Positions 29,583 to 57,537 of a DNA stretch of 64,000 nt are shown piece after piece. The notes below the pieces were generated by a model. The model was given only the letters and a program-made list of their open reading frames with translations. It did no database searches and was not told the DNA's origin. Location: positions 1,837,882-1,901,881 of the forward strand of contig NW_003314281.1 in the NCBI RefSeq assembly GCF_000143415.4, given 5' to 3'. Each line of letters starts with the position of its first letter. Within the stretch, counting starts at the first letter, position 1. The DNA is from Selaginella moellendorffii. Taxonomy: Eukaryota > Plantae > Lycopodiophyta. Position numbers and translations under genes: made by a program.

Positions 29583-31820
29583 ATGTTTCTTACTTCCAGG
29601 CGATTGAAATGGCAGCAGAGGCTGAGAAGACGGAAAAGATGCTATTCCAACCACGCAGCAAAGGAAGAAGTAACCCAACCAAGTCTGGAGGTTCTTTCGT
29701 CCTTGCTCCTGCAGTGCCTGGACGTGGATGTCGCTCGCCACGTTCACTCCCACATCTCCAAGCACGGGCTGGAAGCGTCGCTAGCGAACCAGCTCGTGGC
29801 GACGTACGTGAGGCTTGGATGTTTCAGCGAAGCTCACCAAGTACTCAACAGGAACTCTTGCTCGGGGCTGGGGACATGGAGTGGGATCATCACGGGGTAT
29901 GTCCAGAATGGGCAGCGGGCAGCGGCATTTTTTCTCTTCCGGAAAATGCAGCAGGACGGCATCGCTCCCAACAAGTTCCTGCTGGTGAGAGTCTTGAGCA
30001 GTGGTTGCTCGAGCCTCGCACAGGGAAAGCTGGCTCACGCGTGTTTATCAGAGGCAACGAGTGGCTCCGACCGTGTTGCTGGAAACGCAGCGATCAACAT
30101 GTATGGGAAGTTTGGGTGCGTGGAATCGGCAAAGGTAGTGTTTGACAGAGTTTTGGAGCGGGATATCATCACCTGGACGTTGATGGTCTCTGCGTATGCC
30201 CAAAACGGGCATACCCGACAGGCATTTCAAGTCTTTGGGAAGATGCTGGTGGAGGGGGTGGTGCCAAACAAGGTGACTTTTCTGGCTATACTCAACGCTT
30301 GCTCGAGCTCGTCAGAGGCTGCTTTTGTTCATCGGTTGCTCTTTGAGAGCGGGTTCCAGTTCACCGCCAAGGTAGAGTCCTCTCTCGTGGACGCGTATGG
30401 CAAATGCAAGAACGTCAGTGCTGCAAGGGCAGTGTTTAGCTCCATGACGGACAAGACCAACGTGGTGACTTGGAACGCTTTCATCAGAGCTTTGGCCAGC
30501 AGCAGAGATGCGAGTGGAGCTCTTCAAACGTTTCGAAGCTTGCTGCTCCAAGGCTTGGTTCCCGACACGGTTACGTTCATCAATGCCAGCCAGGGAGCGA
30601 AAACTCCTCCGGAAGCAAAGTACCTCGAAGCTTGCCGCCAGGAGAGTGGGGTTCAACTGGACGTAGCTCTCGGCAACACTCTCATCAACATGTTTGGCGG
30701 CAGCAGCCAGCCTTGCGAAGCTCGGAGAGTTTTCGATGCGACTCACAACAAGAACATCGTCTCCTGGAACGCGATGCTGTCGGCTTACTCTCAGAACGGA
30801 CACTTCGAGGAGACGATCGCACTCTTCAAACAGATGGCCTCGACCAAGACGGTGAAGCCCGATAAGCTTACGTTCGCGTCGGTTCTAAGCTCGTGTGCGA
30901 ACCTCGAGAACCTCCGGGAAGGAAAGCTAGCGCACGCAGCAGCAGTGGAAGCTGGCCTGGAGTTCGCAGTGCCCGTAGCTGCGACGCTCATCCAGATGTA
31001 CTCCAAGTGCCACTGCCTCGAAGAAGCCAGGGACATTTTCAGCCGGAGTCCATCCTCGGACGTGGTAGCGTGGACTGTGATGATCTCGGCCTATGCTCAG
31101 AACGGTCGACCCCAGGAAGCCATCGCTCTCTTCTTCCGCATGACAGTGCCTCCAGATGGCGTGGCCTTCGCCACCGTCCTGGGAGCCTGTGCGAGTTCCG
31201 AGAACTTGGAGGCCGGAAGAGTGGTCCGAGCACAGATCGTGGAGCTCGGGCTGGACGCTGAGAGGGCGGTGGCCAACGCGGTGCTGGACCTCTACGGCAA
31301 GTGTGCCGAGATCGTCGAGACAGCGGAGATCTTCGGCAGGATGAGGCAGCGAGACAGAGTTTCGTGGAACACTATGGTGGCGGCGTATGCCCGAGCCGGG
31401 CATACCGCCGGGAGCCTGTGGTGCTTCCGGGCGATGCAGCTGGAGGGCGTTTGTCCGAGCGAGGTGAGCTTGGTGAGCGCGCTCTCGACATACAGCCACG
31501 CGGGTCTCGTCGAGCAGGGCTGCCAGTGCTTCGCCTCCATCGCGAGCGACTATGGGATGGTTCCATCGCGCGAGCAGCAGGGGTGTGTGGTGGATCTCCT
31601 GGGCCGAGCGGGGTCGTGGATTGCGGAGGATTTGATCCGGGTGGTGGCTCCATCCACGTCGAGGTCCGAGCTGTGGAAGGCGGTGTTGAGCGCTTGCAGG
31701 ATCCACTCGGACGTGGAGCTGGGCGAGTGCGCGGCTGCTTGTGTTCTGGAGATGGATCCTGGCAGTGACTCCGCTCATATCATCTTGTCCAACATCTATG
31801 CTATGGATCATCCAACTTAG
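29583..31820 (+). CDS. Intronless PLS-class PPR protein with E domain (745 aa)
   Basis: Multiple PPR motifs (NAAINMYGKFG, DIITWTLMVSAYAQNGH, VSWNAMLSAYSQNGH). E-domain region CVVDLLGRAG...WKAVLSACRIHSDVELG...ILSNIYA. Confidence 0.92.
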   Translation: MFLTSRRLKWQQRLRRRKRCYSNHAAKEEVTQPSLEVLSSLLLQCLDVDVARHVHSHISKHGLEASLANQLVATYVRLGCFSEAHQVLNRNSCSGLGTWSGIITGYVQNGQRAAAFFLFRKMQQDGIAPNKFLLVRVLSSGCSSLAQGKLAHACLSEATSGSDRVAGNAAINMYGKFGCVESAKVVFDRVLERDIITWTLMVSAYAQNGHTRQAFQVFGKMLVEGVVPNKVTFLAILNACSSSSEAAFVHRLLFESGFQFTAKVESSLVDAYGKCKNVSAARAVFSSMTDKTNVVTWNAFIRALASSRDASGALQTFRSLLLQGLVPDTVTFINASQGAKTPPEAKYLEACRQESGVQLDVALGNTLINMFGGSSQPCEARRVFDATHNKNIVSWNAMLSAYSQNGHFEETIALFKQMASTKTVKPDKLTFASVLSSCANLENLREGKLAHAAAVEAGLEFAVPVAATLIQMYSKCHCLEEARDIFSRSPSSDVVAWTVMISAYAQNGRPQEAIALFFRMTVPPDGVAFATVLGACASSENLEAGRVVRAQIVELGLDAERAVANAVLDLYGKCAEIVETAEIFGRMRQRDRVSWNTMVAAYARAGHTAGSLWCFRAMQLEGVCPSEVSLVSALSTYSHAGLVEQGCQCFASIASDYGMVPSREQQGCVVDLLGRAGSWIAEDLIRVVAPSTSRSELWKAVLSACRIHSDVELGECAAACVLEMDPGSDSAHIILSNIYAMDHPT

Positions 31821-32316
31821 ATGGAGTTTCTTGAGTGTGATCCTCGAAAACCATGCAGAGAAGCTTCTCTTGAGGACTTTTCTATAGCTTGTTGACATTG
31901 TGACAAGGATATAGTCTGAAAGGATTCTAAGCTTGCGAAGAAACCATGCGGTGGCAAAGAAGGACATGATCTTGGTTCCTGCGACGACTTCCTTGGTATG
32001 ATTTCGCAATGTCGGGCGGTATCGAAGGTTTAGCCGAGAATCCCGAGCGGTTTCTTTTCTGGTGATGCATCCTCGGAAGACTTCGGCGAGTGGATAAGCA
32101 CGGAAAATTGTACAAAAGTCTGGACAGAATGGTGGCGTGCCAGCGACTTGAAAATGGTCGCGTTTTTTTTGACAAGTCATGTGGCGAGTTTGGTGGGAAG
32201 ACCAGCGTGATTAAAGTCTTTGTCGGAAGCTCCGGATCATCTCATCACTCGGTGATATAAAATCGCAAGCTTTTCTCGAGATCGATCGCCGATTTAGAGG
32301 TTTGCTTTGCTCTACG

Positions 32317-32577
32317 ATGAGGCGATTTGGAGTGATGTTCCTGGTGCTCTTGGCGCTGGCGGCGGTGGCCACGGAGGTGGAGGCGCAGCAGCAGTGCTTC
32401 CGCGAGAGCGCATGCCTGCCGGGAGGATTGGACTGTGATACCTACTGCAAGTCTTGCCATTTCTTCCAAGAGGGCCAGCGATGCGTCAAGTGCAAGGGCG
32501 GGAGCTGCGATATCTTCTTAAGATGCATCTGTGATGCACCATGCAGCTTCTCAAACTGCCCAATGCTCTCAGGCTAG
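32317..32577 (+). CDS. Secreted 12-cysteine defensin-like peptide, copy A (86 aa)
   Basis: Signal peptide MRRFGVMFLVLLALAAVATEVEA. Mature spacing C-x5-C-x6-C-x3-C-x2-C-x8-C-x2-C-x4-C-x5-C-x-C-x3-C-x4-C, containing Cx3C, GxC and CxC. TATA-like atataaa about 60 bp upstream. Confidence 0.85.
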   Translation: MRRFGVMFLVLLALAAVATEVEAQQQCFRESACLPGGLDCDTYCKSCHFFQEGQRCVKCKGGSCDIFLRCICDAPCSFSNCPMLSG

Positions 32578-32639
32578 AAAACAGCCTGACTCTGTTGCTT
32601 GCTTCTCGCAAGGTGATGAAATAAAAGTGTCAGCTTATG

Positions 32640-34200
32640 TTAAGGACAAAAGTAGTCGTTAAGCCTCTTTGCTTTCACAGACGGCACAGTGGAAATCCTG
32701 TTGGCAATCAAGCGGAAGGATGTGAAATCCAGTTTACTTATCCGGGTAAGCTTCTCAAGTAGAGAAAGGAGCTGGCTGATTTTGGTTTTGCTGCCAGTGG
32801 TTTGAAGAATGTTTCACGCCAGAATGCAAGCAGTGGAGCTTTCAGGGGGTCTTGCTTGGTCATGGTAGGCTAGCTAGAGATTCATTTCTGCTTTATTCAC
32901 GGGTGCTTTGGAGATGATTTCATTACCAATGGAGTCTTGCTATCCCTTATCATAAGATGCTGCTCTGAGCTTGACAACAAGTCGTTTCCTACTCAGTTTC
33001 GCTCAGTTTCGCTCAGTTTCGCTCTTTGCTTTGATTCACGCTCCAAGGGCGAAGTCCTGGAGCTGCTCATCGGGTTTGGCGAGCAGCTAGAACGTTTTGC
33101 GCATCTGGTAACTCCTTTTTTTCGCTCATTTTGTATGCAACACCCAACTATGGTGTTCACAGGGTTTATGGAAGGCCTATGCTGTTGGTAAGCTAACAAG
33201 CACCAGTTATGATTTATTCCGACTGTCACATCGCAGGCGAGAGCCGCCCTTCTCCCGAACTGCAGCTCGGAAACCTTGATCAGGTTGCGAACTATTGTTG
33301 GTCCATGCAGCACGACCGGTAGTAGTAACTCCATGTTCGATCTGATTCTTTTGTACAGTGTCTCTTGATGAAGTGCCAGAAGATTGCTCTGCACTTGTCT
33401 ATTGTGGAAGAGCTTGCCTTGGTGAGGCCGGATCATTCATTCGTGCTTTTCCGTAGACTCTCAGCGCTATCCGGCATGGGCTTGCAGGAGGTGTTTAAAA
33501 TGGCAGGGGCGTTCATGGCCACCTCGGCTGATCCGAGGGGCATTTGACATTATCGAGTTGGCATTAAATCGTGATCGCCTTGTTTCTACAAGTCAGTGCT
33601 ATGATTCTACGTTGAAGCTCGTAAAGGTGAGTTACATGTATTTGCAACTAAGTTAATCGTGCTTGTTAGTTGATATTCAGATCCACGAGTCGACGTTCGA
33701 GTTACTCAGGGACATAATGAATCTGCTGTTTGCTTTTGCCATCTATCCGGGCTCTGATGAAACCAGCCAACAGTTCCTCCAGGTTTGCTCTAATCGGGGA
33801 GTCGACCAGCAGTTACGGATGGTAAAGATGATCATGTGCAAGAAACGTTGAAATACTGAGCTCATATTTTGCGTGCTACAAGGTGGCGTGTACTGTATAC
33901 CTGTACCTGAGCCTCATGTTAAAGATGGTAAGACGAGAGCTTCTTTGTGATTTGTCCCTGCGAGACTCACTCAGGCGAAACGTTTTGGTGCGGAGGAGCT
34001 TAAATGCGTGGTTCAAAGAGCTAAACCCGCAATCTATGGAGGTCAAAGTTGATCGTGGTGCTTCTATAACGCGTAGAAGTGCGGTTCCCTACCTAGAGCA
34101 TGCTCTACTGGCGACGAAGGACCCCAAGTTTATTGTGGAAAACGGCCTTCCTTCCGAGCTCTAACGCATGTAAGAGACTGTACGGTAGATAAACTGCAAG
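32640..34200 (+). pseudogene. Remnant of uncharacterised multi-exon gene X, copy 1
   Basis: Exon-like blocks (GEVLELLIGFGEQLERFAHL, CQKIALHLSIVEELAL, LSGMGLQEVFKMAGA) recur at ~38.4-39.5 kb and ~47.3-48.9 kb. Indels break the frames. Confidence 0.5.
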
Positions 34201-34359
34201 TTTCTATAGAACCCTAAAGACGTATAAACTCCATGAGGGTCTAGGGCTTAGTGATCGTCCTAGTTGTTGAGCGCAGGGGTGAGGCCCGGATCTCGGCGTC
34301 GGCGCTGGCATTTTGGGATACTGCATTCTAGTAGCAGCGAACACTGTTGATTCGGGCAA

Positions 34360-35962
34360 ATGCAGACAGTCGGAGGCGATCCTGGCATGGCTACAAGAGG
34401 AGATCGGCTACAGATCCTTCCAAATTCTTGAGATCTTTCAAAGTTCTTACTTTTTTCTCTTTTTTCTCTCTTGGAAACCAGGCACAAACAAGTCCAGCTT
34501 GTGCAGATCATTGCCGAGTACCGGCGAAGATTAGCAAGGTATGTTGACCGTGCTTGAGAGGCACAAAGAAGGAAGCTTGCGGAGTCCAAGAAAGAGCAAG
34601 ACACCGTGTATGCAACGCCGATCAAAGGTGACGATCAGATCCTCATAGAGACTGCGCAGGAACATCGCCTGCAAGAACCCGAGCTTTGCAACCTCGACGG
34701 CCTGTGGCTCTCTCCTCCTCCGTACGAGGGAAACGAGAGCGTGATCTTCTCAGTAAGCTGTCGCGATAGCAGCTCGCATGCCTTTCTTATACTCCTGCTT
34801 GAGTCGATCACCAAAGTAACGGAGAGGATCGACATCCGAGCGGACGCAGAGAAGCTAAGGTTTGTGAGTGCTGCTGATCTGCATGAAGTATAGGAATCTA
34901 ACTTGGTGTTTGTACCACCAGGTACAAGTACGAGAACAACGAAATAGTGGATGATTTGTCCACTGAGCCAGAAGATTCACCACTTGGCAAGAAGCTTAGC
35001 GGTAAAGTTGGATTGGAGATGTCTAATAGGAGAACGAATTGGGAGATTCGCGAGAGACAGGGAATGCAAGGTTTTTGTCTTTCTTCTAGTCATGAAAGTG
35101 TCTTTTGCGTTGCAGAAAGCTCATGTTCAGCAGTTTATGGCAACGGAAGAAGCTTTGAACGAAGCTGCAGAGGCCAAAGCTGCAAGCGACAAGTTAATCA
35201 AGTCGCTCAGTGGTGGAACGGAGCTCGACTACGTCCAGAACGAGGGAGGGCTTCGCCAACTGGAGGTAACTCATCTTCTATTTCGTCCGTCGAGCTGAGC
35301 CGTGTGTTACTTAGTGCGAGGTGTGGGCCAAGGAGCGGCAGTTAGCTGGTGTCAAGGCAAGCGTAGCGACACTCACGTCGGAGGTTCAACGTTCGAAAAA
35401 GCTATGCGAAGAAAGAAAACAAGCGGAGGAATCCCTGAGGCGGAAAAGAATCGAGGAGTTCGACGCCCGCCGCAGGGAGCTGGAATCTGTTTACACGGCG
35501 TTGATCCGAGCTAATATGGTAAGCAGCAGCTTAGCATTTCATAGGCAAGTTTGGCAGTCTGGAAAAAATCTCACGAATAATTTGTAGGAAGCTGCTGCTG
35601 CGAGGGAGCAACATCCGGCCGCAGCATTCGAGTATTCTGCCAACACAATACTTCCTGTCTGTAATATGGTACAAGAGAAGACCGTGGGTGCTCAGGACCT
35701 CTTAGAAAGAGAAGCCACCATTTTTCAGAGAAGCCCGGACAACCGGCTGTATATGCTGCCTGTCACACCTCAGGTGTGTGAAATCTGCCGGATAGCTGCA
35801 GCATCACAATACTCGCAAGGTATGTAAATTTGTTTCATCCGTCAAACAAGTTTTCCTCTTTCTTTTTGTTTCGTATTGTAGGAGCTGAAGCACAAGATGC
35901 TGGCATGATAGCCATTGTGGAAGCGCTGAGGTTCTGTCTCAAGCCTTGCTCTTCTCCGGCCA
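34360..35962 (+). pseudogene. AUGMIN subunit 5 pseudogene with deletions and an internal inversion (~34675..34796)
   Basis: Matches the intact gene at 49030 onward. Large exon-1 deletion. [25 protein letters not shown] is present on the minus strand. Confidence 0.88.
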
Positions 35963-35988
35963 GCTTTGTCCGGTCTTTGTCCGGCCAG

Positions 35989-36129
35989 CCTTCGTGACTT
36001 CTTTCTTGGAAACAAGCTCCCGAATGTTCTCGTCACCTGGATTAAATGTTTCAAGAGTTAACTTAGAAAGCACGGATCCAAGCCTTCTCACCGACGATTG
36101 TAGTTGTTTCGGTCCACTCGTCCACTTGA
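35989..36129 (-). pseudogene. Inverted fragment of the coiled-coil gene (copy of ~28226..28375)
   Basis: The reverse complement matches 28226..28375; the ORF track shows the same KHLIQVTRTFGSLFP string on the minus strand. Confidence 0.85.
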
Positions 36130-36177
36130 CTCAGGCTGGCCACGAAGGGTTAAAGTGGTTGGGGTGGCCTGTTAAAG

Positions 36178-37470
36178 TTGCTCGAGCTCGTCACAGGCTG
36201 GTTTTGTGCATCGGTTGCTCTTTGAGAGCGGGTTCCAGTTCAACGCCATGGTAGAGTCCTCTCTCGTGGACGCGTATGGCAAATGCAAGAACGTCAGTGC
36301 TGCAAGGACAGTGATTAGCTCCATGACGGACAAGACCAACGTGGTGTCTTGGAACTCTTTCATCAGAGCTTTGGCCAGCAGCAGAGATGCGAGTGGAGCT
36401 CTTCAAACGTTTCGAAGCTTGCTCTCCAAGGCTTGGTTCCCGACACGGTTACGTTCATCAATGCCAGCCAGGGAGCGAGAACTCCTCCGGAAGCAAAGTA
36501 CCTCGAAGCTTGCCGCCAGGAGAGTGGGGTCCAACTGGACGTAGCTCTCGGCAACGCTCTCATCAACATGTTTGGCGGCAGCAGCCAGCCTTGCGAAGCT
36601 CGGAGAGTTTTCGATGCGACTCACAACAAGAACATCGTTTCCTGGAACGCGATGCTGTCGGCTTACTCTCAGAACGGACACTTCGTTCTGAGGGACGCTT
36701 TCAGCCGGAGTCCATCCTCGGACGTGGTAGCATGGACTGTGATGATCTCGGTCTATGCTCAGAACGGTCGACCCCAGGAAGCCATCGCTCTCTTCTTCCG
36801 CATAACAGTCCCGCCAGATGGCGTTGTCTTCGCCACCGCTCTGGAAGCCTGTGCGAGAGCCGAGAACTTGGAGGCCGGGAGAGTGGTCCGAGCAAAGATC
36901 GTGGACGCTGAGAGGGCGGTGGCCAACGCGGTGCTGGACCTCTACGGCAAGTGTGCCGAGATCGTCGAGACAGCGGAGATCTTCGACAGGATGAGGCAGC
37001 GAGACACAGTTTCGTGGAACACTATGGTGGCGGCGTATGCCCCAGCCGGGCATACCGCCTGGAGCCTGTGGTGCTTCCGGGCGATGCAGCTGGAGGGCGT
37101 TTGTCTGAGCGAGGTGAGCTTGGTGAGCGTGCTCTCGGCATACAGCCACGCGGGTCTCGTCGAGCAGGGCTGCCAGTGCTTTGCCTCCATCGCGAGTGAC
37201 TATGGGATGGTTCCATCGCGCGAGCAGCAGGGGTGTGTGGTGGATCTCCTGGGCCGAGCGGGGTCGTGGATTGCGGAGGATTTGATCCGGGTGGTGGCTC
37301 CATCCACGTCGAGCTCCGAGCTGTGGAAGGCGGTGTTGAGCGCTTGCAGGATCCACTCGGACGTGGAGCTGGGCGAGTGCGCGGCTGCTTGCGTTCTGGA
37401 GATGGATCTTGGCAGTGACTCCGCTCATATGATCTTATCCAATATCTGTGCTATGGATCATCCAACTTAG
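36178..37470 (+). pseudogene. Truncated PPR pseudogene (copy of ~30300..31820)
   Basis: 5'-truncated, frameshift near 36423, internal deletion of ~30806..31030. Confidence 0.88.
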
Positions 37471-38006
37471 ATGGAGTTTCTTGAGTGTGATCCTCGAAAA
37501 CCATGCAGAAAAACTTCTCTTGAGGACTTTTCTATAGCCTGTTGACATTGTGACAATGATATAGTCTGAAAGGATTCTAAGCTTGCGAAGAAACCATGCG
37601 GTGGCAAAGAAGGAAATGGTCTTGGTTCCTGCGACGACTTCCTTGGTATGACTTCGCAATGTCGGGCGCTGTCGAAGTTTTAGCCGAGAATCCCGAGCGG
37701 CTTCTTTTCTGGTCCACGGAAGACTTCGGGCCGAGTGGATAAGCACGGAAAATTGTACAAAAGTCTGAGCAGAATGGTGGCGTGCCAGTGACTTGAAAAT
37801 GGTCGCGTTTTTTTGACAAGTTGGCGAGTTTGGTGGGCAGACCAGCGTGATTAAAGTCTTTGCGACTTGAAAGATGGAAAGATGGGACCCCAGGAAGTAA
37901 CTCGGAAGCTCCGGATCATCTCAGCACTCAGTGGTATAAATTCGCAAGCTTTTCTCGAGATCGATCGCCAATTTAGAGGTTTGCTTTGCTCTTACTTTGC
38001 TCTTCG

Positions 38007-38267
38007 ATGAGGCGATTTGGAGTGATGTTCCTGGTGCTCTTGGCGCTGGCGGCGGTGGCTACGGAGGTGGAGGCGCAGCAGCAGTGCTTCCGCGAGAATG
38101 CATGCCTGCCGGGAGGATTGAGCTGCAACTCCTATTGCAAGTCTTGCCATTTCTTCCAGGCGGGCCAGCGATGCGTCAAGTGCAAGGGCGGGAGCTGCAC
38201 CCTGTTTGGAAGATGCATCTGTGATGCACCGTGCAGCGTCTCAAACTGCCCAACGTATTCAGGCTAG
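38007..38267 (+). CDS. Secreted 12-cysteine defensin-like peptide, copy B (86 aa)
   Basis: Identical signal peptide and all 12 Cys conserved; intact ORF; ggtataaa upstream. Confidence 0.85.
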   Translation: MRRFGVMFLVLLALAAVATEVEAQQQCFRENACLPGGLSCNSYCKSCHFFQAGQRCVKCKGGSCTLFGRCICDAPCSVSNCPTYSG

Positions 38268-38429
38268 AAAACAGCCTGACTCTGACTCTGTTGCTTGCTT
38301 CTCCCAAGGTCTTCATGAAATAAAAGATGTGTTCGGTGTCAGCTTAAGTTAATCAAAAGGAGGGACAAAATTACTCTCTTTAAGGAAGGGTAAAGTTTAA
38401 CATATAAAGCGAAACCCTGTTAAGGTATT

Positions 38430-39520
38430 TGCTTTCATTGATGGCACATCCTGTTGGCGATCAAGCGGAAGGATGTGAAATCCGGGTAAGCTTCGCAAGT
38501 AGAGAAAGGAGCTGGCTGACTTTGCTTTTGCTGCCAGTGGTTTGAAGAATGTTCCGCTGCCAGAGCCTACGATGCAAGCAGTGGAGCTTTCGGGGTCCTG
38601 CTTGGTCACGGTAGGCTAGCTAATTCACTTGGAACTGCTTTATTCAGGGGTGCTTTGGAGCAGTTGTCGATGATTCCATCGCCAACGGAGTCTTGCTATC
38701 CCTTATCATAAGATGCTGCTCTGAGCTTGTCAACAAGTCGTTTCCTACTCTGGTGCCCAGTGCCGCTCTTTGCTCTGATTCACGCTCCAAGGGAAGTCCT
38801 TGAGCTGCTCATCGAGTTTGGCGAGCAGCTAGAACGTTTTGCGCATCTGGTAACTCCTTTTTTTCGCTCATTTTGTATACAACACCCAACTGTAGTGTTC
38901 ACAGTGTTTATGGAAGGCCTACATGCTCATGCTGTTGGTAAGCTAACAAGCACCAGTTATAATTTATTCTGACAGTCACATCGCGAACTGCAGCTTGGAA
39001 ACCTTGATCATGGTCCATGCAGCACGACCGGTAGTCGTAACTCTTTCCGTGCATGTTTGATTCTTTAAGGCAGTGGCACTTGGAGTACATCTGGATGAGC
39101 GTGGGCACTGCGAACTCCAGGCCAGCTTCCACTGAGCTCTTCCTCAATCGACAAGTGCAGAGCAATCATCTGGCACTTCATCAAGAGACACTGTACAAAA
39201 GAATCCTTGGTGAGGCCGGATCATTCATTCGTGCTTTCCGTAACCGTCTTGTTTCTAGTGTCTATGGATGCTAAGGACGGAGCAGCGCTATCCGGCATGG
39301 GCTTGCAGGTGTTTGAAATGGCAGGGGCGCTCATGGCCACCGGCGCGACTCGCCTGATCCGCGGGGCATTTGACATTTTCGAGTTGGCGATAAATCGTGA
39401 TCGCCTTGTTTATACAAGTCAGTGCTATGGTTCTACGTTGAAGCTCGTTAGGGTGAGTTACATGTATTTGCAACTAAGTTAATTGTGCTTCTCTTTTGCA
39501 GTTGATATTCAGATTCTACG
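38430..39520 (+). pseudogene. Remnant of gene X, copy 2, with inverted inserts at ~39066..39205
   Basis: Homologous to 32640..33700. Contains an inverted PPR fragment and an inverted gene X exon. Confidence 0.55.
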
Positions 39521-39524
39521 ATCC

Positions 39525-40335
39525 TGTTTTGGTTTTTAAAAAACTACAGGCACTCGTTGAAGCCATGGGAATCAGCTCTATGCTAGGCCCTGAGGCGATA
39601 GCGGCAGCGGAGAGAAATGCCGACATGGTTGCTGCCAGAGCTGGTGCAGGCGACCCTTCAGCGATGGCGTCAATCTGCCGGATAGCTGCAGCATCACAAT
39701 ACTCGCAAGGTATGTAAATTTGTTTCATCCGTCAAACAAGTTTTCCTCTTTCTTTTTTTTTCGTATTGTAGGAGCTGAAGCACAAGATGCTGGCATGATA
39801 GCCATTGTGGAAGCGCTGAGGTTCTGTCTCAAGCCTTGCTCTTCTCCGGCGAGCCTTCTGGAAAACCTGGCGCGCTCCATCAACTTGGTTCAGACACTGA
39901 GAGATCTCGTTGGCAGCGGACGAGCTCTTTTGACAGCAGCAAACATCTCCAGACCCGACTACGAAAAGTAAAGAACAAAAACACCAGATAAACGTTTTCC
40001 AAGTCTCACTCCTTTGGATGCTTTGCTCCAGAACTGCGAATGCGTGTGCTGAGACAACCAGAGAACAGGAGCTCATTGCTCTCGAGGAGTGGCTACCGAC
40101 GCGGTCCTCGAAGCGCACAAGTGCCTGGAAGATTGCCATCGAGTTCGCGGCCTGGTAAACTTCTCGTCTCATCAGCTGGATTTGACACGAGATAGACTTC
40201 TTCTCGCGCAGGTGAACGAGTTGTGGGAACAGTCAGCCGCAACCGCGGTGGTTTGGATCACGTCAAAACGCTGCTGCCTGGTTTCGCTCACGTCAAGCAG
40301 CTCCAAAACGCCTTCTATGAGAAGCAGCTGCTGTG
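39525..40335 (+). pseudogene. 3'-half AUG5 pseudogene
   Basis: Matches ~51152..51980 with frameshifting deletions near 40090-40100 and 40260. Confidence 0.88.
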
Positions 40336-40416
40336 CCGTACAATCCGATGAAAGCACAGTACAGTTGCCACGTAAGCATCAAAAACCGTTATTGCGGAAT
40401 ATTCGCCAATTTGGAA

Positions 40417-40652
40417 CATTCGAACATTCGAACGCAACCGGATTCGAACGGGTATCGAACGTTTAATACCCGTTTAGCTTTTTTTCGAACCCTGATTTTA
40501 CGGTTTTTTTGAACCTTGATTTTACATGAACCCTAATCCTAAGTAAAAGAAAGCATATTCTTTAGGGTTTTTAAAAATATTCTTGGTGTTTAAACGCCGT
40601 ATTATACGTGCGTTTTAAATGGTGTTTTTTATTAATCGTACCCGTTCGAATG
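40417..40652. mobile_element. Small AT-rich insertion with inverted termini (MITE-like)
   Basis: attcgaacgggta (40442..40454) pairs with tacccgttcgaat (40639..40651). The segment is absent from the paralogous locus at ~52107..52185. Confidence 0.5.
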
Positions 40653-40668
40653 CAAGTGACTCACAACG

Positions 40669-41222
40669 TCCCGCTGTGCGTGTCGCCACAGCGGGCCGCA
40701 TCGACTATCCCGTGAACTATGATCCGGGGATCACGTCATGCCACCGCCGCCGCAACATGTATGGGCATTTTCTTCGATTTCGATTTGGTCCTGCTCGATG
40801 TCCGGCATCATTGCGTTCTGGTCTTGATTTTCCTGGAGCACAGGGATAGATCCAAGGATGAGAATGGTGAGGGGTTTTATTTCCTGTGTAGGCCAAAGAA
40901 ATCCATGACTTTGTGGATATTGAGTCCACTGCGGATCCACTTGAGAAGCGTCCTGTAAAATGGAGGAGAGCGCCTGTTAGCAGGGTGAATCCAAAGTTTA
41001 CCCGGGAGGTGTCACACATGAAGCTGGATAACATGTGTACCGTGGAAACTCGCGTTCACGACCCAAAGCTCCGGGCTCTCCAGTGCTGGTATCTTCCGAA
41101 ACTTAAGAGACAACCTCGTTCTCCTGGTGCCAAAGCCGAGGGCGCGCCGAGGATGTTCCGGGTAAGCTTTTGTTCTCTCTTTTCCTTTGAAGTTTGTTTG
41201 TTTACTCGTTTCTTCTTTTCAG
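40669..41222 (+). pseudogene. Partial copy of gene Y (5' part of 52181..52750)
   Basis: Near-identical to ~52186..52750; lacks the ATG context and the 3' exons. Confidence 0.7.
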
Positions 41223-41392
41223 CTCTCCGTCGCGCCCTGCCCTGGGAATCCGGTCATGGAGCTCTCTTCCATCCTCGAGCGATCTAGCGGCCACGAATTT
41301 CTTGGGGAGCGATGCTGCGAGCTTGCGATCGGCCTCACTGGATGCGTTTGAGCACCGGGATCATGAAAAGAAATGGCCATACATCCAAAGGC

Positions 41393-42400
41393 CTTGTACT
41401 TCATATTCTCAAGAACTTCCGAAGAAAAAGGCTACTTTGGTTTCAATTGACGAGACAGTGATGACAGGGGCTTCAAAAGAACCAGCTCAACAATACGCTG
41501 ACCAGATGCTGCACTACGAGCTGGAAAATTACGTCGGAAAAGATGCTGTAGAAGTTAGAACCGAGTCTGCTTGTAAGGAATCGTACAGTGGCGATGACAA
41601 GAATACTCCTCAAGTGCTGAATAGTCAAGTGGACGACTGGACCAAAACAACTACAATCGTCGGTGAGAAGGCTTGGATCGGTGCTTTCTAACTTAACTCT
41701 TGAAACATTTAAGTTTCCTAAAGAAGAAAGAAGTCACGAAGGTTTGCCGCTTTAACATGCTTGCTTTCTTTCTCACTCGCATTACAGGAAAAGAAGGAAC
41801 TTTTAGACGACTATAAACAAGGTTAAAATTGACTGGAGTGCTATACGGAGTATGAAGTCAAGGCAAGTTTTGTTTGTAAGCCAGCATTTCTTCTATTTGG
41901 TCTTCTAAATTCTTCTATGCTTGCTGATTGCAGATAGTTGAAATGAAAATGATGATGCTAAACATGAAATCTCAGTATCGGCAGCAGATGACGACTACCG
42001 GAAAAGGCCATATCAATGTGAAACTTCTACAGCTGCCAACGATGAAAGAGTTTTCCTTGGTTACAAGCAACCAAGCGAAACAAAACGTTGATTTTCTGAA
42101 GAAGCAAATGCAAAAGCTCAAGCAGGATAAAGAAAAATTGAGCAGGGAGCTCTTTCCTATGAAAAAGAAGCAGAGGTACATGTGTCATTATCCCAAGCCT
42201 GCTTCTTGAACTAAATTTCTTGCCAGGCAATCTGAGAAGCAGAAGAAAAGCCTTGATGATGCATTGGATAAAGTCTCAGGTTAGCAGACTGCAATTCCAG
42301 GAACTAAAACAGTATAATGTTCCAAATACCTATTGGGCTTAGTTTAATGATTTCAGAGAACTAGCAAGATGAGATGAAAAGATATTGGATCTCATCCAAG
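41393..42400 (+). pseudogene. Partial, frameshifted copy of the coiled-coil gene (~27974..29055)
   Basis: CTSYSQELPKKKATLVSIDE... and IVEMKMMMLNMKSQY... are duplicated with indels; truncated by the retroelement. Confidence 0.85.
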
Positions 42401-42404
42401 AAAT

Positions 42405-45140
42405 TATAAGTTATAAATTTTTTCTTTTCACTTTGCTAACTTCATTTCTTTTTTTTCAATTTGCCAACTTATCTCATCTCTGTCTTGGCCTTAATTAAGT
42501 TCTTTTATTAAATTTTTTGCCTATTGTATTAACTTTTATTTGGTTTTATTTGGATTGAGTTATTCATTACACAAGTAATGGGGTATTAGCTATTCATCCA
42601 TAAATTCTTAAATTCTTTCCTAATCCCCTTTCTTAGATATGATTGGATTTAAAGTTTGGTTACATTCCCTACAAGCATAAACAGCCAAGAATATGAAGCT
42701 TCCAACATCCCTAAATACAATAAAATTTAATCATAATACCCTTTAAATCTTAAACTTTTGATGCATCGGACTTTAGGGGGAAATACCATGGCCTAATGGC
42801 TTGGTATAGGTACCCTTACTCCCCCACTTTCATCCCAAAGAGAAAGCCCAAACCTTTATGAAGGAGCATTGTAATCGATAGTGGAAATTTCTCTTAAGCA
42901 TTTTCTTGAATGGTCTTTTTGGCATTATTTAATTTTGTGCTCACTCCCACCCAATGCCACTAACTTGTAGTCTTAACCTTAATTCGATTTGGAAACACCA
43001 TTAGAAAGTTCTTTCAAGATTGAATCTTAAACTTCACTATCTCTACTATACTTTTGGAGTATATCCCTACCCTCTGGGAGACGATCACTTTGGGCTTTCA
43101 CTTTATAACTTAAATTAGTATTTGGACTCAATCTTAGACTCAGTTTTATCTAATGAATTTTTTATCGTTCTAGTCATGATTTAAGGACCTTTTAGCCTAT
43201 GACACTTCAAGGAGTTAATTCTTTACAACTGTATTACCCATAGAAGAAGTTCAATTGAATGTCTCTATTTAATTTTACTACATGTTAACTATGTCTTTGA
43301 GCACATGCCCCACTTAACGGTGTGTCTAAATAAGCCTCCCCAGTTATTATACCCTTCATCTCACCTTGCCCTATTAAAGGGTTGGAATTCAAATTTAACC
43401 TCTATAAAATACATTTACAGATTTAACATCCTTTTGGGGAGTTAGGTATAACTCCCTATATCTTATTAACATATGCTAATTAACTTACCTTTGGCAGGTT
43501 TTTGGGTCCCAATATATAATATTACTCAATTTCACAAATAAATATTTTAATTAAACTTTGCATAAGTACATAAAGTTTTATCTTGCAAAAATTTCTTTAC
43601 TGAATCTCAAGTGTTAACTAGGTTTTCCTTTAGTTCCCATGTTACTTTATAAAGTGAACCTCCTTTCCACTTTATATAGAATTTTTTCATTTTGTATCTT
43701 TGTTATTAGCTCTTATGTGCATTGAGGATGGCCTCATCCTCGTATTCCTTCTCCTCTTGGATAACCTCGGGTAAAAGTCTCACTTAGTCCTTATGAAATG
43801 GGTCCTCAAAGTACAATTTGAGTAAGTTCACGTAGAATAGAAGGTGTATCTTTATCATCTCTTAGGGAAGTCAAAAATGGTAAACCACAATACCAATTCG
43901 AGCCTCAATTTCATAAGGCCCTATGAACATACTTAAGAAACTCAAGATTATATCATTTTTAAGAATATATACATTTTACCTTTAAGTAAACTTCTAAATG
44001 ATCTCATTCGGTAACCTTAAGTTCTTAGTGTTTAGTTACACCTCCCCAAGTTAGAATTATACACGTCAATGCTTCTAATTTGCATATTTCATTTACCTTT
44101 ATTGAGCTTGTTGTAAGGAATCCCTTACTAGATTCTAAATGTTGAGTATTTTTGCCGTGAACATATCTATTACAGATAACTTTCCATGATACTCAGTTAT
44201 ACCAAATTCTATAGAACCTTCAATACCTTGCCCTTTGATAACTTCTTATGGACTCACCCCAATACTTGAATGTGGTGAATTGTTATAGTATATTTCTATA
44301 AGTTTTAATTAACTTACCCAATCAATTTAGTATATAAAGATATAACATTATAAATAATCTTCCATTGTCTATTCACCCTTTTAGTTTTTCCATCTGTTAA
44401 AAAATATGATTGCCATCATACTTGATTCAATACTTAATACCTATTTGTGGGTGATAAGTTACGCTAAATTTAGCTTGGTGCAATGTAGAAGAGTTTCCAG
44501 AATTTACTAATGAAAATTTTATCTCAATTTGAGATAATTGTTTTTGGCCTTCCTCGCATTTGAACCACTTGTTTGAAGATTAACTTCATTACACCTTCCA
44601 TATCCACTTTCGTTGTGATGGGTATGAAAAATATCATTTTAAAAAATTGATCCACCACTATGAATATTGCATCAAACCCTTTTATTTGGAGGGAGTCTTG
44701 TAATGAAATCCATCGTAAAACATTTCTACGAACAATCAAGAATTTGGAAGCTTTGCAATAAACCCCCACTAGCTTTAGCTATGTCTCTTATCTGTTAACA
44801 TGTTAGATATATCTTTACGTATGTTTGGCTAATGATATTTCTTTTTGAGTAAGCCTATTGTCTTGAGTATTCTATTGTGTTCAATTTACATTTCATATAA
44901 CCCATTTTCTCTTTCTTAGATGGCTTGCCTCTTTATGCCTCTTGGTTCTTTAGTAACATGTTAGACCATCATCTTCATACATTATCTGCATATTATCCCA
45001 AAATATTATTATTGCGTTGGATATTACTAACTTTAAGTTTTTAAAACATCTGCTATAATATTATTTTTCCTAAGTTTATACAAAATCTCACTGCCAAAAC
45101 ATTAGCCCATTAACCCTATTTTCCTGTTTATTGCTCCAAA
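42405..45140 (-). mobile_element. Degenerate Ty3/gypsy LTR-retrotransposon remnant (integrase region)
   Basis: Minus strand WISLQDSLQIKGFDAIFIVVDQFFKMIFFIP...RGRPKTIISN is the integrase core. A GPY-motif-like FIGPYEIEARIG lies near 43890-43930. AT-rich with many stops; boundaries approximate. Confidence 0.8.
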
Positions 45141-45142
45141 GC

Positions 45143-46316
45143 TTCCCGACATAGTTACATTCATCAAGAAAACTCCTCTAGAAGCAAAGTACCTTGAAGC
45201 TTGCCACCAGGAGAGTGGGGTTCAACTGGACATAGATCTCAACAACGCTCTCATCAACATGTTTGGCAGCAGCAACCAGGCTTGTGAAGCTTGGAAAGTT
45301 TTTGATGCGACTCATAACAAGAACATTGTCTCCTGGAACGCAATGCTGTCAGCTTACTCTCAGAATGGACACTTCGAAGAGACAATCGCACTCTTCAAAC
45401 AGATGGCCTCGACCAAGATGGTGAAGCCCAATAAGCTTACATTCGCATCAGTTCTAAGCTCGTATGCAAACCTCAAGAACCTCCGGGAAGGAAAGCTAGC
45501 GCACGCAGCAGCAGTGGAAGCTGGCCTGGAGTTCGCTCATCCAGATGTACTCCAAGTGCCACTGCGTCGAAGAACCCAGGGACATTTTCAGCCAGAGTCC
45601 ATCCTCGGACGTTGGACTGTTATGATCTCGGCCTATGCTCAGCACGGCTTATGCCCCAGGAAGCAATTGCTCTTTTCCGCATGACAGTGCCACCAGATAG
45701 CGTGGCCTTCGCCACCGCTCTGGGAGCCTGTGCGAGTTCCGAGAACTTGGGAGGCCGGGAGAGCGATCCGAGCACAGATCGTGGAGCTCAGGCTGGACGC
45801 TGAGAGGGTGGTGGCCAACGCAGTGCTGGACCTCTATGGCAAGTGTGCCGAGATTGTCGAGACAGTGGAGATCTTCGGCCGGATGAGGCAGCCAGACAGA
45901 GTTTCGTGGAACACTATGGTGGCGGTGTATGCCCGAGCCAGGCATACCGCCGGGAGCCTGTGGTGCTTCCGGGCGATGCAGCTGGAGGGTGTTTGTCCGA
46001 GTGAGGTGAGCTTGGTGAGCGTGCTCTCGGCGTACAGTCACGCAGGGGCTGCCAGTGCTTCGCCTCCATCGTGAGTGACTATAAGATGGTTCCATCACGC
46101 GAGCGGCAGGGGTGTGTGGTGGATCTCCTGGGCCAAGCGGGGTCGTGGATTTCGGAGGATTTGATCCGGGCGGTGGCTCCATCCACACCGAGCTCCGAGC
46201 TGTGGAAGACGGTGTTGAGCGCTTGCAGGATCCACTTGGACGTGGAGCTGGGCGAGTGCGCGGCTGCTTGCGTTCTCGAGATGGGTCCTGGTAGTGACTC
46301 GGCTCATATCATTTAG
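45143..46316 (+). pseudogene. Third, frameshifted copy of the 29583 PPR gene (3' part)
   Basis: Matches ~30553..31790 with multiple frameshifts. Confidence 0.88.
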
Positions 46317-46810
46317 TCCGAGTGTGATCTTCGAAATTCATGCATAGAAACTTCTCCTTGAGGACTTTTCTATGTTGACATTGAGTCTCTAGGCTTGTGA
46401 AGAAACCATGCGGTGGCAAAAGAGGAGATGGTCTTGGTTCCTGCGACGACTTCCTTGGTATGACTTCGCAATGGCGGTCTCAAAGGTTTAGCCGAGAATC
46501 CCGAGCGGCTTCTTTTATGGTGATACGGAAGACTTCGGGCCGAGTGGATAAGCACGAAAAATTGTAAAGAAGTCTGAACAGAAAGGTGGCGTGCCAGCGA
46601 CCTGAAAAATGGTCGCGTTTTTCTGACAAGTCAGTCGATTCTGTGGCGAGTTTGGTGGGAAGAGCATGTCTTTGCGACTTCGAATATGGGACCCCAGGAA
46701 GTAACTCGGATGCTCCGGATCATCTCAGCACTCAGTGGTATAAATTCGCAAGCTTTTCTCGAGATCGATCGCCAATTTAGAGGTTTGCTTTGCTCTTACT
46801 TTGCTCTACG

Positions 46811-47071
46811 ATGAGGCGATTTGGAGTGATGTTCCTGGTGCTCTTGGCGCTGGCGGCGGTGGCCACGGAGGTGGAGGCGCAGCAGCAGTGCTTCCGCGAG
46901 CGTGCATGCCGCCCGGGAGGATTGAGCTGCGATTCCTACTGCAAGTCTTGCCATTTCTTCCAGGCGGGCCAGCGATGCGTCAAGTGCAAGGGCGGGAGCT
47001 GCACCCTGTTTGGAAGATGCATCTGTGATGCACCGTGCAGATTCTCAAACTGCCCAACGTATTCAGGCTAG
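46811..47071 (+). CDS. Secreted 12-cysteine defensin-like peptide, copy C (86 aa)
   Basis: Identical signal peptide and all 12 Cys conserved; intact ORF; ggtataaa upstream. Confidence 0.85.
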   Translation: MRRFGVMFLVLLALAAVATEVEAQQQCFRERACRPGGLSCDSYCKSCHFFQAGQRCVKCKGGSCTLFGRCICDAPCRFSNCPTYSG

Positions 47072-49029: not shown

Positions 49030-51982
49030 ATGCAGGGAGCTGCGTCGGCTGCGCCACAGGCGGAGGCGATCCTGGCATGGCTGCAAGAGGAGATCGGCTA
49101 CAGATCGGCTGGGGATCACGCATTGCCGTCGCCCGAGGCGCTGCGGCGGCTGTGCCGCGGAAATATGCTGCCCGTGTGGAAGTTCTTGGTGGAGAGGGTG
49201 AAATCCGACAAGACGGTGGAGACTGTGCGGCGGAACATCCTCGTACATGGCGGGAGCAGTGGCGCGGCGGAGGAGAGTGGCGATGGGAAAGCCAGGGAGG
49301 AGGGCGGCGCCGCTGCCACCACCAAGGCCGGGAAGAAGAGAGGCGATGGGAAATTCAAGGGGAGGGGCGAGAAGACCCCCGCTGCCGCTGCCAAGGAGGA
49401 GAAAGAACGCGAGAGCAAGGCTCTGGAGGGCGATGATTCGAAGGAGCGAGCTCTCGCGGAGAGGGATTCCGCGGAGAAGGAGGTGGAGAGATTGAAAGGT
49501 GTGATGGCGCGGCTGCAAAAGGACGTGAAGAGCAGGATGCTGGATCTCTCTCGCGAGGAGGGCGAGCGCCAGCGAGTTCTGGATGACAAGTTTAATTCGA
49601 GGTAAGAACTATAGGTCTCTCGAAGTTCTTGAGAACTAAGTTCTTACCTTTTTTTCTTCGTTTTTCCTTCTTGGAAACCAGGCACAAACAAGTCCAGCTT
49701 GAATCGTTCGATCAGCGATGCGAGCAGACTGTGCGGATCTTTGCCGAGTACCGGCGAAGATTGGCAAGGTATGTCGACCGTGCTCGAGAGGCACAAAGAG
49801 GGAAGCTTGCGGAGTCCAAGAAAGAGCAGGACACAGTGTATGCAACGTCGATCAAAGGTGACGATCAGATCCTCATAGAGACTGCGCAGGAAAGGAGTAT
49901 AAGAAAGGCATGCGAGCTGCTATCGTCACAGCTTACTGAGAAGATCACGCTCTCGTTTCCCTCGTACGAAGGACGAGAGAGCCAAGGTGACGCTCAGGCC
50001 ACCGAGGTTGCAAAGCTCGGGTTTGATGATGGAGAAGGCATGGCTGAGGATATCAGGGAGGCTGCACTGAGCCTCTTGAAGAATCCAACGCAGCTCTTGC
50101 GGGCGATGGCGACTTATACTGCTCGAATCGTTGCTTTGATCACCAAAGAAACGGAGAGGATCGACATCCGAGCGGACGCAGAGAAGCTGAGGTTTGTGAG
50201 TGGTGCTAATCTACATGAAGTGTAGGATTCTAACTTGGTGTTTGTACCAGGTACAAGTACGAGAACAACGAAATAGTGGATGATTTGTCCACTGAGCCAG
50301 AAGATTCACCACTTGGGAAGAAGCTTAGCGGTAAAGTTGGATTGGAGATGTCTAATAGGAGAACGAATTGGCAGATTCGCGAGAGACAGGTATAGCGGAA
50401 TACAAGGTTTTTGTCTTTCTTCTAGTCATGAAAGTGTCTTTTGCGTTGCAGAAAGCTCATGTTCAGCAGTTTATGGCAACGGAAGAAGCATTGAACGAAG
50501 CTGCGGAGGCCAAAGCTGCAAGCGACAAGTTAATCAAGTCGCTCACTGGTGGAACGGAGCTCGACTACGTCCAGAACGAGGGAGGGCTTCGCCAACTGGA
50601 GGTAACTCATCTTCTATTTCGTGCGTCGAGCTAAGCCGTTTGTTATTTAGTGCGAGGTGTGGGCCAAGGAGCGGCAGTTAGCTGGTGTCAAGGCAAGCGT
50701 AGCGACACTTACGTTGGAGGTTCAACGTTTGAAAAAGCTATGCGAAGAAAGAAAACAAGCGGAGGATTCCCTGAGGCAAAAGTGGAAAAGAATCGAGGAG
50801 TTCGACGCCCGCCGCAGGGAGCTGGAATCTGTTTACACGGCGTTGATCCGAGCTAATATGGTAAGGAGCAGCTTAGCATTTCATAGGCAAGTTTGGCAGT
50901 CTGGAGAAAATCTCACGAATAATTTGTAGGCAGCTGCTGCTGCGTGGGAGCAACATCCGGCCGCAGCATTCGAGCATTCTGCCAACACAATACTTCCTGT
51001 CTGTAATATGGTACAAGAGAAGACCGTGGGTGCTCAGGACCTCTTAGAAAGAGAAGCCACCATTTTTCAGAGAAGCCCGGACAACCGGCTGTATATGCTG
51101 CCTGTCACACCTCAGGTGTGTGAATTGGAACTTTTTCTTTCTCTGCTCAAGGCTGTTTTGTTTTTTAAAAAACTACAGGCACTCGTTGAAGCCATGGGAA
51201 TCAGCTCTATGCTAGGCCCTGAGGCGATAGCGGCAGCGGAGAGAAATGCCGACATGGTTGCTGCCAGAGCTGGTGCAGGCGACCCTTCAGCGATGGCGTC
51301 AATCTGCCGGATAGCTGCAGCATCACAATACTCGCAAGGTATGTAAATTTGTTTCATCCGTCAAACAAGTTTTCCTCTTTCTTTTTTTTCGTATTGTAGG
51401 AGCTGAAGCACAAGATGCTGGCATGATAGCCATTGTGGAAGCGCTGAGGTTCTGTCTCAAGCCTTGCTCTTCTCCGGCGAGCCTTCTGGAAAACCTGGCG
51501 CGCTCCATCAACTTGGTTCAGACACTGAGAGATCTCGTTGGCAGCGGACGAGCTCTTTTGACAGCAGCAAACATCTCCAGACCCGACTACGAAAAGTAAA
51601 GAACAAAAACACCAGATAAACGTTTTCCAAGTCTCACTCCTTTGGATGCTTTGCTCCAGAACTGCGAACGCGTGTGCTGTGACAACCAAAGAGCAGGAGC
51701 TCATTGCTCTCGAGGAATGGTTACCGAGTCTCAAGCACGCGGTCCTCGAAGCGCACAAGTGCCTGGAAGATTGCCATCGAGTTCGCGGCCTGGTAATCTT
51801 ACTTCTCGTCTCATCAGCTGGATTTGACACGAGATTTACTTCTCGCGCAGGTGAACGAGTGGTGGGAGCAGCCAGCTGCAACCGCGGTGGATTGGATCAC
51901 GGTCGATGGCCAAAACGCTGCTGCCTGGCTCGCTCACGTCAAGCAGCTCCAAAACGCCTTCTATGAAAAGCAGCTGCTGTGA
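49030..51982 (+). CDS. AUG5: AUGMIN (HAUS) complex subunit 5; multi-exon, intact
   Basis: N-terminus [14 protein letters not shown]...[34 protein letters not shown] and C-terminus [27 protein letters not shown]...KQLL* match plant AUG5. GT-AG introns. Confidence 0.88.
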
Positions 51983-55573: not shown

Positions 55574-55977
55574 TGCTGTTCCAGCAGCAGCAGGACGGCA
55601 ACAGCATGTCCGACGACGGGAGCAAAGGCATATGACGGTGTGTAGGCGTCCAGCGAAACCAGGGGACCGGGAACAGGAAGAAACGCAAAGAATGCCGGGT
55701 GTGCTGCTGTACCGTCCAGAGCTGAGACACGATTCTTCGCGGCATCGTATTAAAATGCTCAAAATGCCGAACGCATTGTGCACCGGTTTAGAGTGTTTAA
55801 GACAGGGAAAACCGGGACAACACCAAGATTGCCATCAGTCCTATCGTCCACTGACACCAACGTGCCTGGCGTGGCTATCTCGACGTTAGCTCGTTACATG
55901 GGAGAAAAGCTGCAAAAGTCAGTTACGCAGCAAACCCGAGCTTTTACTACTATAAGTCAGGTACTTCACCAATTTTC

Positions 55978-56698
55978 TTATTGCCTTGGCATGACTATCT
56001 TTACGAACTCGGGGTAGCTAACTTTGCCATCTTTGTCTGTGTCAGCTTCTCTCACCATGTCTGCGATCTCTTCGTCCGTGAACGACTCGCCGAGCTGGTG
56101 CATAACATGCTTTAACTGCGAGGGAATACGTACGTATAAAAAAGAGAAAAAAGACAGCTTTTCTTTTTTCTCGTTACCTCAATCTCTGTGATAAAACCAT
56201 CTCTGTTTCTGTCCAGGACTGTGAAGGCTTCCTTGAGATCTTCCTCGGCATCTGCGTCCTGTGAAGATCATGGAAAGATCTGGGGGAGCATCACTCAGCT
56301 TGTCCCAAGAAGCAAGCTCGCGACAAGGGTACATACCTTCATCTTGCGGGCCATGAGCACCAGAAATTCTGTCCAGTCGATTGTGCCGTTGCCATCGACG
56401 TCCACCTCGTTGATCATGTCCAGGAGCTCCGTGTCGCTGGGGTTTTGTCCCAAGGAACGCATCACAATGCCCAGTTCCTTGGTGGTGATGGATCCTGGCG
56501 ACGGTGACGAGTGTGTAAGTTTTTCTATTCTCTTTCGCTTCATTTTCAGTTGCTTCTTTTTTTCAGGAAGACAAGAAGAGTACCATCTCCATCCTTGTCG
56601 AAGAGGCTGAAGGCATCCCTGAACTCTCGCAGTTGCTCCTCGGTGAGCCCCTCGATGATCTTGTCTTGGCTGGCAGTGCTCGTCTCGGACGCCTCCAT
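55978..56698 (-). CDS. Calmodulin-like protein with four EF-hands; multi-exon
   Basis: MEASETST...[24 protein letters not shown] loops [48 protein letters not shown]. Confidence 0.9.
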
Positions 56699-57057
56699 GC
56701 TGCCGCGCCAATTGTGGCGGTTACAAAGCGAGCATATTCTGGTTCAACTCAAACTGTGTAAGTTTCTTATAAGATCGTTTTGTGTTATTGCAGTGACATG
56801 TCATGGTAAGCAAACTTCCGTCCTGCCTCTGCCGGAATTTTCACGTAAAACGATCTAACTTCTGCTTTGTTGAAGGTGCAACGAACTCTCGATTCAACGA
56901 TTTTTACGTGGAAAGTCTTTTAAAATTCGAGTCGGAAGAAACAGCACGCGGTCCTTTTGTCTGGCTCTTCGTTCGCACGCTGGACCTTGTCCGACCGATT
57001 GGAGTGGAACCAGTCGCTGGGATCTATAAAACCGCGAGGTATTTCCATCCATTTGTC

Positions 57058-57474: not shown

Positions 57475-57537
57475 ATTAGACAATCAGTAGACCCAAATAT
57501 TTGTTGTTACTGCTATCACTTCCGGAATGGCGGTGCT

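Follow-up and report, generated by a model that had tools for sequence, protein, structure and literature searches.

Copsin-like twelve-cysteine peptides of Selaginella moellendorffii and their closest relative in an actinobacterial gene cluster

Three short genes in a 64-kb stretch of Selaginella moellendorffii scaffold GL377585.1 (the window, to whose full length all positions below refer) encode precursors of 86 amino acids (aa) with the 12-Cys framework of copsin, a fungal defensin, and their closest relative beyond Selaginella is a peptide encoded in an actinobacterial gene cluster. We read the products as secreted, six-disulfide defensins of the copsin type that would act against Gram-positive bacteria, likely via lipid II, and whose founding gene would have been acquired horizontally from a microbe. 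Taken as a whole, we give this reading even chances of being right; its parts are supported to different degrees, as set out below.

Three putative secreted peptides with a copsin-type framework

The initial annotation of the window had described three open reading frames (ORFs) of 86 aa with an identical 23-aa signal peptide and a common 12-Cys spacing, and all of this is confirmed for copies A, B and C (Table 1). The ORFs are intact, and their 12 invariant Cys are separated by 5, 6, 3, 2, 8, 2, 4, 5, 1, 3, and 4 residues in every copy. The shared N-terminus begins with basic residues, continues with a hydrophobic core and has a site of small residues ahead of three Gln, and this hydropathy profile is the one expected for a signal peptide; in five of five alleles a Gln directly follows the predicted cleavage site. 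Copies A and C are 87%–94% identical to B. The differences between A and B (11 residue changes and 6 synonymous codons) and between B and C (5 and 2) are exactly those counted earlier by eye, A and C differ by 11 residue changes and 4 synonymous codons, and all replacements are confined to the mature part. The variable residues are concentrated in the hairpin loop between Cys8 and Cys9. Each copy has retained its stop codon, a TATAAA motif 61–72 nt upstream and an AATAAA motif 42–60 nt downstream of the stop. No fourth peptide copy was found in the window.

The sole Pfam family matched by the three copies is PF18251 (fungal defensin copsin; Defensin_5), with scores of 22.5 bits (E 1.2e-4) for A, 26.7 for B, and 22.0 for C, which places B above the curated cut-off of 25 bits and A and C just below it. 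Plant peptides and copsin have 12 collinear Cys, with 6 of the 11 spacings identical and the other loops off by one or two residues, and the elements C-x3-C-x2-C, C-x2-C, and C-x-C-x3-C are present in the plant peptides as they are in PF18251. Since Cys-rich peptides align easily by chance, significance was controlled by holding the Cys fixed and shuffling all other residues; the comparison with copsin then yields z values of 4.2–5.0 (P ≤ 0.0002). Outside the Cys, the residues invariant in the plant, the fungus, and the bacterium discussed below are the G-L before Cys3, the S-C-H at Cys5, the G in the next loop and the P before Cys11. The assignment of the peptides to putatively secreted, defensin-like molecules of the CS-alpha-beta (cysteine-stabilized alpha-beta) type with a copsin-type 12-Cys framework is supported. 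The initial annotation had likewise proposed secreted, defensin-like peptides with an N-terminal Gln that are neither classical plant defensins nor snakins, which our results support. Its suggestion of a possibly undescribed six-disulfide scaffold is unsupported, as the copsin-type framework is already known (PF18251; PMC4381204). A described class with the exact spacing, which it had named as removing the novelty, was found for the most part: copsin provides the framework, although it is fungal and several of its loops deviate slightly in length.

Copsin has 57 aa, six disulfides, a CS-alpha-beta fold, and an N-terminal pyroglutamate, and binds lipid II (PMC4381204, PMC11462253); its paralogues in Coprinopsis cinerea keep the N-terminal Gln and the 12 Cys (PMC6461984). 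The plant peptides resemble copsin (PDB 2MN5) and the copsin-paralogous peptides (CPPs) in having an N-terminal Gln after processing and in being secreted (both predicted in the plant), and in their tandem expansion. They differ in their host, in a short tail that extends beyond the final Cys, in a non-Cys identity of only ~27%, and in precursor layout, as the copsin precursor contains a propeptide whereas the plant Cys domain directly follows the signal peptide. They are classed here as copsin-like, not as CPP proper. A layout like that of the plant, with only a signal peptide and a 12-Cys domain, is found in the defensin-like peptides (DLPs) DLP1–10 of Coprinopsis (~100 aa; PMC6461984) and in the N-terminal domain of the GH24 lysozymes of this fungus; the DLPs are likened by published description only, are not among the matches at E 0.001, and have no demonstrated activity even in the fungus.

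Several known classes of Cys-rich peptides were considered and excluded. The classical plant defensins (gamma-thionin) have 8 Cys instead of 12 and give no Pfam match at E 10, with NaD1 reached only at E 3.8–5.2. The snakin/GASA peptides also have 12 Cys, but their spacing differs and they too lack a Pfam match at E 10, as do the macins, of which theromacin aligns weakly at C-x3-C-x2-C (E 2.8). Pfam gave the sequences no connection to plant defensins or to defensin-like (DEFL) families, and the neighbours in the ESM Atlas are only mixed CS-alpha-beta families, all scoring below 0.9. Mapped onto the plant Cys, the disulfide connectivity of copsin, which we take to be 1–6, 2–8, 3–9, 4–10, 5–12, and 7–11, would involve all 12 residues.

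The closest relative is bacterial

Among 1.84 billion protein representatives, the only real relative beyond Selaginella is a bacterial peptide (P0005; 55% identity, E 1.8e-10); the same scan otherwise returned a fused Selaginella model and two long proteins with a low-complexity match, and no plant or fungal protein at E 0.001. The bacterial precursor has 77 aa and 12 Cys, with 7 of the 11 spacings, including the first four, identical to those of the plant. Cys-fixed shuffles gave z values of 9.4–10.5 for the plant peptides vs. the bacterial peptide and of 4.0 for the bacterial peptide vs. copsin. A profile built from Selaginella sequences only scores the bacterial peptide at 46.7 bits (null maximum 17.6), and when the latter is added to the profile, copsin rises from 13 to 22 bits. 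A match of the combined profile to 2MN5 is circular, since copsin is in that profile, and was not counted. Non-Cys identity, by eye, is ~47% between plant and bacterium vs. ~27% between plant and copsin. The plant, bacterial, and fungal lineages are homologous, with plant and bacterium as the closest pair.

The bacterial peptide is encoded in a metagenome-assembled genome, Actinomycetales bacterium RSA1 (PKFB01000033.1), and metagenomes again yielded this one species. When contigs of viruses, genomes, and metagenomes were scanned with motifs, the RSA1 species alone turned up (one confirmed GTDB locus and one JGI locus), and Cys-spacing DNA patterns in viral contigs gave chance or repeat matches only. 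No plasmid or phage matched the peptides or three of the cluster proteins in tblastn searches, while word-indexed homologue searches returned nothing for copy B and only the bacterial peptide when this peptide or the copsin alignment was the query.

Within the RSA1 cluster (Table 1), the B2-like peptidase has a weak match to NF033537, the 522-aa protein has a faint amidotransferase match and is without a Pfam or PDB match, and the 81-aa protein matches the actinodefensin-associated protein B at E 2e-9, below the cut-off. The locus may be a peptide-maturation cluster akin to those of actinodefensins and lasso peptides, apparently a hybrid. Actinodefensins proper are excluded, as neither the plant nor the RSA1 peptide has an NCBIfam match; the actifensins and actinodefensins of Actinomyces are CS-alpha-beta lipid II binders, but have 6 Cys and ~37 aa. 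The RSA1 precursor has an acidic bacterial leader in place of the signal peptide of the plant, and its gene has a host-like GC content at third codon positions (GC3). Both precursors have 26 residues before Cys1 and an E-V-(E/D) at positions 20–22 (window 32374–32382), which is possibly a leader remnant or due to chance.

Purifying selection and gene conversion

The peptide genes are under purifying selection. No indel occurs in the 261-bp coding region, whereas the rate in the flanks (2–3 per 100 bp between copies) predicts 5–8 per pair (P 0.005–0.0003), and of the 14 residue positions that vary, not one is a Cys (P 0.035) or lies within the signal peptide (P 0.01). Across all ten pairwise comparisons among five sequences, the ratio of nonsynonymous to synonymous substitution rates (dN/dS) in the mature region is 0.13–0.59, and 0.47–0.66 when Cys codons are removed. 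There is no sign of positive selection, with dN/dS below 1 in every pair, though power is low. Of the selection postulated in the initial annotation, the preservation of the genes holds up. Selected diversification is unsupported, given these dN/dS values; the gap between A and B/C contains surplus synonymous differences along with a nearest-neighbour switch.

This switch becomes apparent when the gene is compared with its surroundings. Upstream, C stands apart from the other two (57 sites vs. 12 for A), whereas inside the gene A does (20 vs. 4; P 1e-8). Copies A and B diverge at 13% of the mature sites vs. 4% upstream, and pure synonymous differences between them are also in excess (5/31, P 0.008). 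Because of this synonymous excess and the change of nearest neighbour at the gene boundary, we read the divergence of A from B and C as the product of gene conversion together with an older A lineage: the A type is a lineage older than its own flanks, B and C are homogenised, and the pattern evidently fits gene conversion. Balancing selection possibly contributed to the history of the A type too.

The scaffold of the other haplotype, GL377627.1, carries intact alleles of A and B in the stretch examined. In its A allele (positions 12361–12633 of that stretch), a Trp replaces the stop codon, resulting in a product of 90 aa that is four residues longer, and several codons are of the B/C type. Allelic divergence of A amounts to 4.7% in the mature part vs. 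0.85% upstream. Between A and B (positions 12920–14550 of the same stretch), part of the GL377627.1 sequence is inverted and its deletions follow another pattern; this region is structurally polymorphic.

Genomic setting and annotation

The peptide genes are part of a segment present three times in the window, with the order pentatricopeptide repeat (PPR) gene, peptide gene, unidentified debris, and HAUS5 (Table 1; HAUS5 copies were searched exon by exon). As the initial annotation had stated, the peptide gene is the only one that is whole in all three segments; PPR is whole in A only and HAUS5 in C only, and what remains of either in the other segments has suffered truncation, deletion, inversion, or a frameshift. 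Since plant genes flank the peptide genes on both sides in both haplotype scaffolds, contamination is excluded.

Table 1. Features of the three segments in the window and of the RSA1 peptide cluster
Feature	Position	Strand	Description
Peptide gene copy A	32317–32577	+	One exon; signal peptide 32317–32385; mature peptide of 63 aa, 32386–32574; net charge ~0
Peptide gene copy B	38007–38267	+	One exon; mature peptide 38076–38264; net charge ~+4
Peptide gene copy C	46811–47071	+	One exon; mature peptide 46880–47068; net charge ~+6
TATAAA, copy A	32256–32261	+	Consensus match only
TATAAA, copy B	37935		Consensus match only
TATAAA, copy C	46739		Consensus match only
AATAAA, copy A	32620–32625	+	Consensus match only
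AATAAA, copy B	38319		Consensus match only
AATAAA, copy C	47132		Consensus match only
PPR gene, segment A	29583–31820	+	Intact, with E motif (745 aa)
PPR remnant, segment B	36178–37470	+	5'-truncated, internal deletion
PPR remnant, segment C	45132–46319	+	5'-truncated, frameshifted
HAUS5/AUGMIN5 remnant, segment A	34366–35967	+	Most of exon 1 and 3' end missing, internal inversion
HAUS5 remnant, segment B	39524–40335	+	3' remnant
HAUS5/AUGMIN5 gene, segment C	49030–51982	+	Full-length (GenBank model 795 aa); compared exon by exon
RSA1 peptide cluster	PKFB01000033.1:7695–15128		S9 peptidase, P0005, B2-like peptidase, 522-aa protein, 81-aa RRE-like protein, MauE protein, ABC exporter (opposite strand)

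Two GenBank models, one of 742 aa (32317–35997) and EFJ26050 of 767 aa (38007–42284), begin at the ATG of copy A and copy B, respectively, and are spliced into HAUS5 debris. EFJ26050 exits the peptide at residue 84 and then joins fragments of several broken genes in several frames, and no gene is called at the copy C locus. Both peptide–HAUS5 fusion models are probably prediction errors; real HAUS5 fusion proteins were rejected, as the B model consists of pseudogene fragments and C is without such a model. Because GenBank fuses A and B to debris and skips C, the stand-alone peptides are missing from protein collections.

Elsewhere in the window, a second triplicated cassette (10272–22292) contains AMP-binding (4-coumarate-CoA-ligase-like) genes interleaved with PPR genes or their remnants, 94%–97% identical. 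Segments B and C are separated by an AT-rich spacer (42000–45100), in which an ORF on the minus strand (44524–44769) by eye resembles a retrotransposon integrase fragment and is without a Pfam match. A 224-aa ORF at 2511–3185 has no Pfam match at E 0.01, and the neighbours at 53500–60286 are ordinary, one gene being GH28 polygalacturonase-like and the other encoding EF1B-gamma, each on the minus strand. No Rfam families were found in the 26–56 kb interval.

Function, origin, and alternative explanations

If the peptides are copsin-type defensins, their signal peptide would be cut after an A-x-A-type site to leave 63 aa with Gln at the N-terminus, a residue that a glutaminyl cyclase of the plant may convert to pyroglutamate as seen in copsin, and the twelve Cys would form six disulfides that hold together a helix and a hairpin in the CS-alpha-beta fold. 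Outside the cell, by homology, the peptides would kill Gram-positive bacteria via the cell-wall precursor lipid II. Like copsin, actifensin binds lipid II, and because both do, lipid II is the likeliest target. The founding gene would have come from a soil microbe and gained a plant signal peptide, and would then have been triplicated inside the PPR–HAUS5 segment. The passenger genes would have fallen back to one working copy each while purifying selection kept every peptide copy, and gene conversion would have shuffled the copies to give neutral (A) and cationic (B, C) forms.

The patchy distribution (Selaginella, one actinobacterium, and Coprinopsis), the intronless gene, and a published lysozyme precedent make transfer from a microbe the likeliest history, and one that we consider somewhat better than an even proposition; an actinobacterium is our best guess for the donor. 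The precedent is the GH25 lysozyme of Selaginella, which has an Actinobacteria-like origin and underwent duplication in this genome (Metcalf et al. 2014, PMC4241558). That enzyme has a supported tree and numerous relatives among bacteria, whereas for the copsin-like peptides there is a single bacterial relative; as only one bacterial species with a relative is known, a root for the transfer cannot be placed. An involvement of prokaryote–eukaryote transfer has also been proposed for bacterial defensins (PMC8819291). More tentatively, and with the balance tilted against it, an actinobacterial antibiotic core, a ribosomally made 12-Cys defensin of the copsin type encoded in an undescribed actinodefensin/lasso-like cluster, may have been captured by a lycophyte, rewired from a leader and ABC export to the secretory pathway, and now serve as a lipid II-targeting antibiotic.

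Several observations weigh against the reading as a whole. Two structure models have low confidence, with a pLDDT (predicted local distance difference test) of 44.6 (AlphaFold2) and 50.0, and three fold searches with such models gave no match; the only helix in a low-confidence model spans Cys3–Cys5 (mature residues 17–24), the place expected for the helix of a CS-alpha-beta peptide. Copy A carries no charge, in contrast to copsin (+6). On the bacterial side there is one species only, with all loci at least 99.98% identical, and on the plant side codon use carries no foreign signal (GC3 0.74 vs. 0.58–0.82 in neighbours). In plants and fungi, annotation tends to miss small genes, which makes absence from these groups weak evidence, and the signal peptide, the missing propeptide, and the N-terminal Gln fit the fungal DLPs (compared by description).

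Plant defensins are mostly antifungal, and the peptides could share the copsin-type ancestry and still do another job, as antifungal or membrane-lipid-targeting defence or in ligand-like signalling of the kind exerted by numerous plant defensin-like peptides. The charge range from 0 to +6 among the copies, the clustering of variable residues in the Cys8–Cys9 loop, and the mixed CS-alpha-beta families (<0.9) as nearest neighbours in feature space would agree with this explanation, which is unlikely in our view and yet the strongest of the alternatives; copsin as the characterised relative and the bacterial defensins are, however, anti-Gram-positive lipid II binders, and Pfam connects the sequences to neither plant defensins nor DEFL families. 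Ranking after it, and likewise unlikely, is a defensive role with a different history, in which an old eukaryotic family, inherited vertically or derived from a fungus (DLP type), was overlooked in plants and the actinobacterium was a recipient or parallel recipient. Such a history would agree with the great rarity of the family in bacteria (one GTDB and one JGI locus of the same species) and with a precursor layout equal to that of the Coprinopsis DLPs, and it can draw on the same transfer proposal (PMC8819291), but it has to contend with the bacterial match at E 1.8e-10, where plants and fungi provide none at E 0.001, with the higher non-Cys identity to the bacterium than to copsin (~47% vs. 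~27%, by eye), and with a bacterial gene that has its own leader, a dedicated maturation cluster, and host-like GC3.

The evident gene conversion and the GenBank models of 742 and 767 aa starting at the ATGs of A and B also bring up the possibility that a recent duplication carried the ORFs along as unexpressed or neutral passengers whose similarity gene conversion maintains, or that they are first exons of peptide–HAUS5 fusions. We regard this as quite improbable: there are no indels and no Cys losses, dN/dS is below 1, the stop codon, TATAAA, and AATAAA are kept in all three copies, the B model joins fragments of pseudogenes that come from different genes and frames, and C is without such a model.

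Implications

In the literature searched, we found no link between copsin and Selaginella, and neither the copsin framework in a plant nor its nearest tie, which is to a peptide cluster of bacteria, is described there; the scaffold itself is known. Copsin has so far been treated as a mushroom peptide, and its framework now spans three kingdoms. This bears on the movement of CS-alpha-beta defensins across the divide between bacteria and eukaryotes. More surprising than the scaffold is that the closest relative is bacterial and that no plant relative was found. For the genome annotation, the finding corrects two GenBank fusion models and one missed gene. It also offers candidates for a plant lipid II-binding antibiotic, with three natural variants ranging from neutral to +6, a bacterial relative, and the unexplored maturation cluster of the latter. 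Should the peptides be a captured actinobacterial antibiotic, copsin would represent a three-kingdom, horizontally spread family, and the lipid II-binding defensin of Selaginella would, to our knowledge, have no precedent in plants.

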